Positions 49,195-52,100 of a stretch of DNA of 64,000 nucleotides are shown in pieces. The stretch is from Macrostomum lignano (taxonomy: Eukaryota): positions 186,001-250,000 of the forward strand of contig NIVC01000061.1 in assembly GCA_002269645.1 (NCBI GenBank). The letters run 5' to 3'. Numbering within the stretch: the first letter of the stretch is position 1; the number at the start of each line of letters is the position of its first letter. Position numbers and translations under genes: made by a program. Under the pieces are notes generated by a model that worked only from the letters and a program-made list of their open reading frames with translations, was not told where the DNA came from and did no database searches.

Positions 49195-52100
49195 CTACTG
49201 CTGCTGCTGCTGCTGCTGCTGACGCTGGTTCGATGTCGACTGATCGTTTTGCTGACTGCAGGAGGCCAGGCTTGAAGCGCATGAGTTAAGGGATTCTGAG
49301 CACACGCTGAGGTTTTTCATGCATTCGTTCAGCTTCTTTCGTGTTGAGAGATCCGGCTTCTGAGGCTCACCTGCTGACTGCGTCGCTGGAGTTGGCTTTG
49401 TTGGAGAGGGAATGAAATACTGCGAAGACTGCGTTGGCAAATGAGTTGAGGCTTTCGCTCTAGGAAGTGAATGATCAGGTCGATTCTGTCGAAGCCTCAG
49501 GTCGAGCAGTCGAAGCCTCTGGTCGATCAGTCGAAGCTTCAGGTCGATTAGTCCAAGCCTCAAGTCGAGCAGTGGAAGCCTCAGGTCGATCTGTCGAAGC
49601 TGCATGTCGATCAGTCGAAGCTTCATGTCGAGAAGTCGAGGCTTCAGGTCGGTCAGTCGAAGCCTCAGTTCAAACAGTCGCAGCTTCTGGTCGAGCAGTC
49701 GAAGCCTCACGTCGAGCAGTCGAAGCTTCAGGTCGATCAGTCGAAGCTTCAGGACGAGCAGTCGAAGCTTCAGGTCGAGCAGTCGAAGTTCAGGTAGATC
49801 AATTGGAGCGTCAGGTCGCGCAGTTGAGACTTCAGGTTGATCTGTCGAAGCTTCAGGTCGATCAGTCGAAGCTTCAGGTCGAGCAGTCAATGTTTCAGGC
49901 CGTACAGTTGATGTTTCAGGTCGAGCAGTTGATGCTTCAGGTCGAGCAGTCGATGTTTCAGGTCGAGCAGTCGATTTTTCAGGTCGAGCAGTCGAAGCTT
50001 CAGCTCGATCGGTCGAGGCTTCAGGCTCAACAGTAGAAGCTTCAGGTCGATCTGTCGAAGCTTCAGGGCGATCAGTCGAGGCTTCAGGTCGAGCAGTCGA
50101 TGTTTCAGGCCGTACAGTTGATGTTTCAGGACGAGCAGTTGATGCTTCAGGTCGAGCAGTCGATGTTTCAGGTCGAGCAGTCGATTTTTCAGGTCGAGCA
50201 GTCGAAGCTTCAGCTCGATCAGTCGAGGCTTCAGGCTCAACAGTAGAAGCTTCATGTCGATCTGTCGAAGCTTCAGGTCGAGCAGTCGAAGCTTCAGGCC
50301 TCACAGTTGATGTTTCAGGTCGAGCAGTTGATGCTTCAAGTCGAGCAGTCGATTTTTCAGGTCGAGCAGTCGAAGCTTCAGCTCGATCGGTCGAGGCTTC
50401 AGGGTGATCAGTTGAGACTTCAGGACGATCAGTCGAGACTTCAGGTCGAGCAGTCGAGACTTCATGTCGATCTGTCGAAGTTTCAGGGCGATCTGTCGAA
50501 GCTTCAGCGCGATCAGTCGAAGCTTCAGGTCGAGCAGTCGAGAATTCAGGTCGATCTGTCGAAGCTTCAGGTCGATCTGTCGAAGCTTCAGGTCGAGCAG
50601 TCGAGAATTCAGGTCGATCTGTCGAAGCTTCAGGGCGATCAGTTGAGACTTCAGGGCGATCAGTCGAGACTTCAGGTCGAGCAGTCGAGACTTCAGGTCG
50701 ATCTGTCGAAGCTTCAGGGCGATCAGTCGAAGCTTCAAGTCGAGCAGTCGAGAATTCAGGTCGATCTGTCGAAGCTTCAAGTCGATCTGTCGAAGCTTCA
50801 GGGTGATCAGTTGAGACTTCAGGACGATCAGTCGAGACTTCAGGTCGAGCAGTCGAGACTTCATGTCGATCTGTCGAAGCTTCAGGGCGATCAGTTGAAG
50901 CTTCAGGTCGAGCAGTCGAGACTTTAGCTCGATCGGTCGAGGCTTCAGTCTCAACAGTGGAAGCTTCAGATCGAGCAGTCGATGTTTCAGGTCGAGCAGT
51001 TGATGTTTCAGGTCGAGCAGTTGATGTTTCAGGTCGAGCAGTTGATGTTTCAGGTCGCGCGATTGAGGCTTCAGGTCGAGCAGTCGAGTCTCCGGGCACC
51101 GACGTGCGATCTGTGGAGATAAGTTCACGCTTAAATATTTCAAGCGCAAACTGGATGTAACATCGACATGTCAGTCGGTGTGGCAAGCAACAGACAGCTT
51201 CTGAGATAACTGTATGAAAACTTCACTACACTCCTGCGATAGACTATCTGTACCTGGATTGTAACCTGCTATCAGTTTCAAAACTCAATTAGCTCTCACC
51301 GATGGTTTCGGTTTCGAATCGCAGCAGAAAACCGGCGGACCTGTGTGCGCCGTTCGAGCCGTACATCACGTGCACCTCAGCTGCTGGCTCAATTGCCACG
51401 TCTCTGGTGGCCGCCCAGCCGCACAGATGGAAGAGCTTTCGAGCTGGGCCGCCGGAGTAGCTGGGAACATTCAGGCTCAAGCAATCACTGCTAGCAAAGG
51501 ACGCCCTGACCAGAGTTATGGAAACCCTGGCCCCCCTGGTTGGAAGCGCTGGAAGTTTCCACACGCAAATCAGATTGCCTGGGTGCGGCCTGAAGCCGTC
51601 GTATCCTTCGTGACTGACGAGCTCGCCCGACGTTTTTGAATCGTCGAAGAAGCTGATTGAACCGCAAGCGTTGCGGCGCACTGGAGATTAGCGAGATTGG
51701 AGTTGAGTGAAGATTCACGTTTGATAGAAACGCATTATTCGAATAAATTTTTTTAATAAATTTATAGATGAAAATATCGTCCAATCTTACAAGCAGGCCT
51801 GCTTAGGTACTGCAGCTGGAAGCCTTTGCTTGTGAGCCGCTCATCTGTGTTGAAGATAACTCCCATCTTCACGTTTTCCATAGCATATATTGGCGATATT
51901 GAGTCCACCAATGCCGTCCTGTTTATTCTTATGTCGCGAAAATATTCCAAATGGATGTAGTCCCGAATCGTAACCACATCCGTCGAGTTGTTTTGCAGAT
52001 CGAGATACGTAAACCAGGCGGTAATTATTCTGCCGGTTGGAATCCCGATCTCCCAGCTGCAACTCATGCTGTTCAGATAGTCTGCCGTGCCGGCGGCTTT

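Follow-up and report, generated by a model that had tools for sequence, protein, structure and literature searches.

How can a single protein come to carry two repeats of quite different character that are written in the same DNA unit? The question is raised by a gene of the flatworm Macrostomum lignano, called gene B here, which lies at 54917-49195 on the minus strand of a 64,000-nucleotide (nt) stretch of contig NIVC01000061.1; this whole stretch is the window, and all coordinates below are positions in it. The last exon of gene B holds a coding minisatellite with a 21-nt unit that changes phase twice within one open reading frame (ORF), at two single-base indels 303 nt apart: most of the array encodes Pro/Glu/Ser/Thr-rich heptads, and the stretch between the indels encodes Leu-rich ones. 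Two relatives, genes A and C, also on the minus strand, lie together with B within 35 kb. As read from the sequence, the locus represents a well-documented and unusually long compensated frameshift in the coding minisatellite of an undescribed family of putative flatworm secreted proteins. On balance we think it probable that this frameshift was inherited by both B and C and is translated, and that the block it created in B is tolerated and largely neutral.

The Leu-phase block of gene B and its two junctions

The repeat ORF of gene B (51186..49195, minus strand) is a single one of 663 codons and stays open through both junctions, reading ...QPEVSTARPDAPIDLPE/LRLLDLK...LRLRQ/NRPDHSLPRAKAST...LNECMKNLSVCSESLNSCASSLASC... 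and closing with Q8 and a stop codon (slashes mark the points of phase change or, in splice sites, the exon borders). Its first part, the array at 51078-49798, consists of 61 units (units 0-60, CGA CCT GAA GCT TCG ACT GMT) that encode RPEASTA or RPEASTD, a reading to which we refer as the PE phase. With 42% Pro+Thr+Ser and a net charge of -32 over 427 residues, these 61 heptads provide the long Pro/Thr/Ser-rich tandem repeat by which a mucin-like secreted repeat protein is recognised. The Leu-phase block follows at 49788-49486, with 101 codons in which 14 units of the same 21-nt repeat are read one base later (GAC CTG AAG CTT CGA CTG CTC), giving the consensus DLKLRLL or, in another register, LRLLDLK. 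The post-exit segment (49485-49195) comprises two degenerate PE-type units (NRPDHSLP RAKASTH), a Pro-rich linker, a Cys tail, a polyGln run encoded by (CAG)n and the stop at 49197-49195.

At the entry junction (49797-49783) the sequence is CTA CCT GAA/CTT CGA in place of the canonical CGA CCT GAA GCT TCG, one G having been lost between 49789 and 49788; the unit concerned, unit 61, reads CTA CCT GAA CTT CGA CTG CTC, and the unit before it, RPDAPID (49818-49798), bears an Asp-for-Glu mark. At the exit junction (49491-49477), CGA CAG A/AT CGA CCT stands against the canonical CAGATCGACC, with CAG AAT (49488-49483) in place of CAG ATC, and the extra A at 49485/49484 restores the original frame. RP-type units then appear again, followed in the restored frame by a tail homologous to that of gene A. 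Both indels lie in one coding exon, neither length is divisible by 3, the second restores the frame and the shifted stretch is stop-free: the block has no stop in the Leu frame, a single one in the PE phase (TGA, 49672-49670) and 16 in the third frame. As the block read in its old phase yields good RPEASTA/D units with this one stop, the unshifted ancestral state can be identified. The original prediction had placed the switch at PDAPIDLPE/LR, the return at LRQ/NRP and the block at 49486-49788, and both peptides and coordinates proved exact. It had also described the PE-frame TGA and a Leu frame running open to a conserved Cys tail, which holds within gene B, whereas the tail is common to A and B only, C having none. 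Programmed ribosomal frameshifting was considered and ruled out, as the genomic ORF is continuous and the repeat changes phase rather than the reading frame.

Upstream of the repeat exon, gene B has two short 5' exons and five CUB exons, which makes eight exons in all. Exon 1, with the ATG (54917-54902), and exon 2 (54807-54739, KFFLLLIELLLFGRLCHC) share homology with their 5' counterparts in A and C, and the conserved exon 2 encodes KF(F/L)LLLIELLL(F/V/I)G..C in all three genes, which by sequence resembles a signal peptide. The CUB exons (54541-54140, 54095-53679, 53045-52689, 52159-51791 and 51680-51300) are all of phase 1-1 and are separated by GT-AG introns. A match to Pfam CUB PF00431 was obtained for the exon at 52687-53034 (25.9 bits against a cut-off of 21.4), and the remaining four are related through tblastn or motif. 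The CUB region has two distant outside matches in total, the best of which is a mollusc DMBT1-like CUB protein with 24% identity. The fifth CUB exon (donor 51299) joins the repeat exon in the PE (RPEASTD) frame, phase 1; the 5' end of the listed ORF (51186-51111) is intron, and the last exon begins at 51110 after the acceptor tctccacag. No stop occurs anywhere across the eight exons, and their splice junctions are canonical GT-AG and phase-matched. The intron between the third and fourth CUB exons (donor 52688, acceptor 52159) is nearly filled by a perfect (ACT)170 microsatellite (52169-52678). The symmetric CUB exons are absent from A and C, which otherwise share the 5' exons and the repeat exon of B, and this distribution suggests that they were shuffled into a gene of signal-peptide-plus-repeat type or were lost from one.

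Gene A (28265-26228, minus strand) is the unshifted paralogue and serves as control and outgroup. Behind 5' exons matching those of B it carries about 67 KPEEPTA units, all in one phase, and then a Cys tail (LNLCVRNLSLCSKTLNSCATSLDSC), to which the tail of B is 47% identical; the Leu-type frame of its array, though unread, has 0 stops in 471 codons. The core of the B tail (LNECMKNLSVCSESLNSCASSLASC, 49332-49258), common to gene A, is predicted to be helical and has Leu and Cys each 7 residues apart, four times. From this spacing and the predicted helix in B, the tails of A and B (26264-26338 and 49258-49332) look like a disulfide-linked coiled-coil module. An origin of the Cys tail from the third frame of the unit (ST-stop-SFDC) was dropped, as no DNA similarity was seen by eye.

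Shared junctions in gene C and their age

Gene C (62177-59618, minus strand) has A/B-type 5' exons (exon 1, 62177-62162; signal-peptide-like exon 2, 62035-61967) spliced directly onto its array, the acceptor tttag/GACCTGAAGCC at 61866 giving ...TE-RPEAS. The array lies in a single ORF of 762 codons (61906..59618; repeat exon 61866-59618) that contains, in order, 58 PE units, Leu block 1 (60619-60347), 2.5 PE units, Leu block 2 (60292-60113), 9 PE units, Leu block 3 (59896-59693), 3 PE units and a TAA (59620-59618). Its entry peptides are PDASTDQPE/LR, PDASTDRPE/IR and PDVSADQ/LR, encoded by CCT GAT GCC TCG ACT GAT CAA CCT GAA CTT CGA in the first case, with GAA ATT in the second, and by a form 6 nt shorter in the third; the exits are LRL/NPP, LRL/KRP and FRL/NRP (CGA CTG AAT CCA CCT, ...AAG CGA CCT and ...AAT CGA CCT). 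A fourth module is hidden past the stop in what is now 3' untranslated sequence (59617-59540), with the short Leu stretch LRQFKFRLLKLEFRR and the exit /NRPKAPPD, and the stop itself is a GAA>TAA change within the fourth entry (CGA GCT TAA CTT CGA).

In a gapless alignment, both indels fall at the same nucleotide of the 21-nt unit in 5 of 5 entries and 5 of 5 exits of B and C. Compared with 103 canonical units, the entry motif CCTGAA(C/A)TTCGAC is confined to three junctions, and that of the exit is found nowhere except at exits. Rare states also recur in the flanking units: GAY (Asp for Glu) stands in the unit before every entry and in none of about 120 other PE-phase units, and AAA (Lys for Glu) follows exits, in RAKASTH of B and in RPKASPD and RPKAAPD after exits 3 and 4 of C. 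By virtue of the same indel nucleotides and the shared rare flanking states, a single origin of the junctions common to B and C is well supported. Matching entries and exits in C had been claimed in the original prediction, as had PD in place of PE before every entry; both were borne out, the same two indels occupying the same unit positions in four entries and four exits of C. Its argument that the junctions are not independent sequencing errors likewise stands, as the indels recur with diverged flanks and rare flank states are shared.

Identity between B and C is about 75% in the 5' flanks, over 700 nt, and 70-79% in the arrays, and the junction flanks are no more alike than the arrays or the gene flanks. 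As the junction flanks are no more alike than the 5' flanks, an old shared origin is mildly favoured. The further claim that the switch predates the B/C duplication survives in part: a single shared origin holds, and an origin before the duplication would look the same in these data as a later ectopic conversion or unequal exchange between the arrays. A clustering of Leu units across the two genes, put forward as a test, did not appear, since the Leu units of B differ by 0-4 positions from PE units and by 2-6 from the Leu units of C. This does not refute the common junction, because B keeps the ancestral consensus unit while the units of C are derived. Moreover, 6 of the 14 units of the B block (49496-49706) carry a GAA>GAG change that replaces Lys by Arg when read in the Leu frame but leaves the old-phase residue unaltered. 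The 125 PE-phase units of the two genes all lack it, the Glu codon of the PE arrays always being GAA, which indicates that the B block evolves apart from its array.

The Leu blocks of gene C are derived relative to that of B. CGA CCT has become CAA GCT or CGA GCT, with loss of the near-invariant Pro codon, and 15-nt units are mixed in to give a 36-nt period, the length changes (21 to 15 nt) being multiples of 3. The module exit-RPxASPD-RPDAxTD-RPE-entry recurs inside gene C, as unequal crossing-over between Leu blocks would be expected to produce. Net charge per residue is +0.13 in the B block; in C it is +0.25 for block 1, +0.13 for block 2 and +0.15 for block 3. The PE arrays of C have a net charge near zero. 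A charge divergence between the blocks of the two genes, as had been suggested, is seen for C block 1 and not for blocks 2 and 3; the consistent difference is Asp in B versus Glu or Lys in C.

Proposed history and rival explanations

Their sequences place A, B and C in one Macrostomum family of putative secreted proteins that looks lineage-restricted: all three have a signal-peptide-like exon and a coding minisatellite with a 21-nt unit rich in Pro, Glu, Ser and Thr codons, to which A and B add a Leu/Cys tail. A 1-nt deletion in an ancestor of the two arrays, which removed the G of GAA GCT, shifted reading from RPEASTD into the second open frame, LRLLDLK. At the array's 3' edge a 1-nt insertion, an A in CTGATCGA, shifted it back, so that the C-terminal tail stays in frame. 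The pair of indels would then have passed to both genes by gene duplication or array exchange, and in C unequal crossing-over may have multiplied the exit-to-entry module into four entry/exit pairs. The stretch between the indels would be translated as part of the protein, turning a disordered, mildly acidic mucin-like segment into a basic one with Leu at 4 of 7 positions and strong helical propensity, a change to a Leu-rich helical-type segment that would follow from the 7-residue period being kept. The block of B may be a by-product that is tolerated and for the most part neutral, with an in-frame path to the tail as the one clear constraint on it, and the blocks of C may since have evolved separately, with the Pro codon lost, Asp replaced by Glu or Lys and a 36-nt period acquired. 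In our reading the B block is probably translated and tolerated, its adaptive value being unproven; translation is favoured by the eight intact exons, by the use of the only other open frame, by the need for the insertion if the tail is to be reached and by the stop in the old phase.

A number of observations weigh against this account. The 21-nt unit is stop-free in two of three sense frames, and in the PE array of B the unread Leu-type frame has 2 stops in 426 codons and the third frame 77; an open Leu frame is expected by composition and is not evidence of selection. The repeat units are few and, through concerted evolution, non-independent, which limits the codon-position, private-variant and synonymous/non-synonymous counts; within these limits, variation in the B block by Leu-frame codon position (13/15/5) follows the same pattern as in the PE array, and the block-private changes, counted by type, divide evenly between the frames: 2 types are synonymous when read in the PE phase and 3 when read in the Leu frame, while 2 are synonymous in neither. 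In neither count does the Leu frame of B bear the mark of purifying selection, and the block holds L>P, R>P and R>G changes and four L>Q changes. In the non-charge columns of the C blocks, 16 synonymous and 17 non-synonymous variant codons were counted, near a rough neutral expectation, and the ratio of non-synonymous to synonymous rates (dN/dS) between the A and B tails, about 0.8-0.9 by Nei-Gojobori, comes from too few sites (37-77 codons) to be informative. Gene C ends in a nonsense change inside an entry junction, and DNA alignment detected no remnant of the Cys tail downstream of it. No Macrostomum relative of the Leu block, tail or CUB region was recovered from large protein collections, whether the query was the Leu block together with the tail, the five CUB exons together with the tail or, in an exhaustive search, a profile built on the tails of both A and B. 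Finally, in NIVC01000292.1, the only related contig compared, colinearity ends before gene B and no orthologous copy is found.

The profile of the A and B tails, searched against 1.84 billion representative proteins, returned no homologue and one irrelevant bacterial repeat protein, and no description of the A/B/C family was found in the literature on Macrostomum CUB or mucin repeat proteins. Judged by these sequence searches, the family looks lineage-restricted or unannotated.

An alternative that we consider unlikely is that these are decaying copies: B, C or both would be pseudogenes or near-neutral relics, the slips would be ordinary minisatellite mutations, and no stable protein would exist between the junctions. 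The Leu frame that is open by composition even where it is unread, in A and in the PE array of B, would fit such decay, as would the missing frame-specific selection signal in B, the loss of the Cys tail and the nonsense change in a junction of C, and the lack of an annotated homologue among public proteins. An unrelated 21-nt minisatellite at 3007-3538 also slips phase once in an open frame (ORF 3013-3657, minus strand), passing from QLGETKL to NWEKLSC units from the unit starting at 3345; as this slip is uncompensated, it serves as a control showing that single-base phase slips occur in other arrays of this genome. Decay sits poorly, however, with the eight exons of B, which have canonical, phase-matched splice sites and no stop, with two indels that compensate exactly around a shift through the only other open frame, and with the intact 5' exons and 762-codon ORF of C. 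In addition, if the age of the junctions equals that of the B/C flanks, which have diverged by about 25%, a dead gene should hold more lesions.

It is also doubtful that the Leu blocks are under selection as the product of a ±1 toggle that builds block copolymers of acidic/neutral, disordered mucin-like segments and basic Leu-rich helices, which could serve in multimerisation, coacervation or surface binding of secreted material. AlphaFold2 models computed from single sequences, with no alignment, give for B one predicted helix at residues 23-125 over the whole Leu block (block-mean predicted local distance difference test, pLDDT, 86-97 in the interior), PE units as coil, a disordered Pro-rich linker and a predicted helix over the Cys tail; for C, three predicted helices coincide with the three blocks and the PE segments between them are coil. 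As idealised Leu-rich repeats score well in such models, this indicates helical propensity only. The B block (LRLLDLK x14) combines its predicted helix with a seven-residue period and hydrophobic a/d positions. Besides predicted helices exactly over the blocks, selection would be consistent with the four copies of the toggled module in C, and with C blocks that evolved a regular LRLLKLK/LRLLE pattern of 12 residues, changing length in frame and acquiring no stop (0 in 219 codons of the frame read, against 7 in 216 in the former PE phase, most of these 7 being copies of one CTC>CTT change). The B block lies 45 residues from the tail with its heptad-spaced Leu and Cys, and we read the change in the GAG>TGA region of B as giving L-F-E in the Leu frame, with an acidic residue back at the usual Asp position. 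However, no statistical excess of synonymous change is seen in the Leu frame; the B block contains helix-breaking and polar replacements, one C block alone is distinctly more cationic, and unequal crossing-over multiplies modules without selection.

A more speculative version, in which we place little confidence, takes the minisatellite as "bilingual": a single slip would make a mucin-like segment a Leu-rich helix, a second slip would revert it, and the family would have kept and multiplied such blocks as secreted coil-helix-coil, acidic-basic copolymers. Under this reading a slip would give a ready-made helix because 21 nt correspond to one helical heptad and two frames are stop-free. If true, it would provide a natural example, open to dating, of how a frameshift in a repeat gives rise to new folded sequence.

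That the block is removed from the mRNA as an intron, or bypassed, and never appears in the protein is very unlikely. One decent donor-like site, GAC/GTGAGG (49710), and several AG sites in or after the block are present, but in a splice-site scan no reasonably good donor/acceptor pair was found that would excise the two junctions in frame. Those pairs that do keep the frame depend on a weak donor lying 500 nt upstream and would take out most of the array as well, and the DNA unit of the block is that of the surrounding exon.

Highly improbable, too, is that mutational hot spots gave B and C the same deletion and insertion separately. Each of the two sites does have a short repeated context, and the arrays have had many generations to mutate, but a coincidence would be needed at two sites, about 1/21 each, and the Asp-for-Glu unit and the Lys-for-Glu units would have to coincide as well, for which we estimate a joint probability below about 1e-5.

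That both single-base indels of B are consensus errors, as their location inside a repeat array and the extension of an A run from one to two at the exit might suggest, can hardly be credited given the identical indels four more times each in C with diverged flanks, the dozens of identical k-mers elsewhere in B that are unaffected, the stop in the PE phase between the indels, the divergence of the C blocks, which makes sense only with an old shift, and the 100% perfect (AGAC)101 (405 nt) and (AGT)170 (510 nt) microsatellites of the same window, which argue for few indel errors in the assembly.

Known systems and the surroundings of the family

With a compensated frameshift inherited by B and C as the preferred account, several known systems offer points of comparison. 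Ohno is said to have proposed in 1984 that a repetitious coding sequence whose second frame is stop-free can give rise to a long new polypeptide by frameshift. The present genes are alike in having an oligomeric repeat without stops in a second frame, or nearly so (0/471 codons in A and 2/426 in B for the Leu-type frame). Ohno's case is uncompensated and yields a whole new enzyme, whereas the shift in gene B appears to be internal and compensated and its product would be another simple repeat.

Compensatory pairs of frameshifting mutations have been described in six high-confidence cases, with 7-99 nt between the indels (PMC8935012). Like them, gene B has two short indels in one exon, with lengths summing to a multiple of three and a stop-free new frame, near the 3' end of the gene and in a poorly conserved low-complexity region. 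Here, in contrast, the indels are 303 nt apart in a tandem repeat, two paralogues share the pair and C has four pairs; moreover, the published cases are backed by mRNA or protein (PMC8935012), whereas gene B is known from genomic sequence alone. The shifted stretch of gene B is about three times as long as the longest published high-confidence compensated frameshift of vertebrates and insects.

A frameshift in a mucin minisatellite is also known from ADTKD-MUC1, a tubulointerstitial kidney disease of autosomal dominant inheritance, in which the variable number tandem repeat frameshift protein MUC1fs is uncompensated and harmful (PMC5843638, PMC7248079). As in that case, a single-base indel in a coding minisatellite of mucin type turns a Pro/Thr/Ser repeat into a basic repeat of other character. 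MUC1fs is, however, a pathogenic recent human mutation with loss of the C-terminal domains, while in B the frame is restored before the tail, and the shifted state of the present family is Leu-rich and fixed in two paralogues. The gain of mucin-type Pro/Thr/Ser exonic repeats by non-mucin genes has been called "mucinisation" (Pajic et al. 2022, PMC9417175). Gene B resembles such genes in joining globular CUB domains with a long exonic Pro/Thr/Ser-rich repeat, A and C having the repeat alone after the putative signal peptide; that study concerns repeat gain and not a change of reading frame, and the label mucin-like is applied here by composition. In comparison with a heptad coiled coil, the Leu-phase repeat would agree in its period of seven, in Leu assignable to a/d with opposite charges (D/K) at e/g, and in its long predicted helix, and would differ in having Leu also at c and f (4 of 7 positions), Pro/Gly interruptions in B and a period of 12 in C.

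If expressed, the block would be an unusually clean natural case of a protein gaining a long, radically different stretch in one step, a single polypeptide being encoded in part by one frame of the DNA unit and in part by another. The series formed by A (unshifted), B (minimally changed) and C (further evolved) could show the fate of a frameshift-born segment over time. The locus also serves as a warning for annotation, in that such genes will tend to be split or thrown out by gene finders and repeat maskers, and in that function does not follow from the mere openness of a second frame in a coding minisatellite.

Elsewhere in the window, a Ty3/gypsy long terminal repeat (LTR) retrotransposon occupies 5825-14466, with its gag, protease, reverse transcriptase and integrase sequences (6451-12151) split over five ORFs and its LTR pair marked by the same 46-nt tandem repeat at 5825-5964 and 14189-14466. 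A BEL/Pao-like reverse transcriptase ORF follows at 16795-18051. Between genes A and B, a fibrinogen-C-terminal-like exon (29550-30143, minus strand) adjoins a tandem repeat of 10.5 copies of 30 nt (30179-30494), and an intronless TCF25-like ORF (40613-42517, minus strand) encodes a protein 98% identical to a Macrostomum lignano entry; an exact look-up of this protein gave no record. G+C content reaches 64.5% in 40001-42000 around the TCF25-like gene and is 36-57% in the remainder of the window. The Mlig_3_7 contig NIVC01000292.1 is colinear with 33781-45702 at 89-95% nucleotide identity and then has a DOCK-like gene where the window has gene B; from this arrangement the two would be paralogous or rearranged regions. 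A search of the window against Rfam gave no matches, and a sub-threshold phage match of the repeat ORFs in Pfam was discarded as a low-complexity artefact. Dense, regular minisatellites lie between and around the genes, at 42661-43781 (11 nt x100), 44356-44956 (24 nt x25), 55514-55831 (24 nt x13), 56020-56922 (22 nt x41) and 57164-58480 (26 nt x51).

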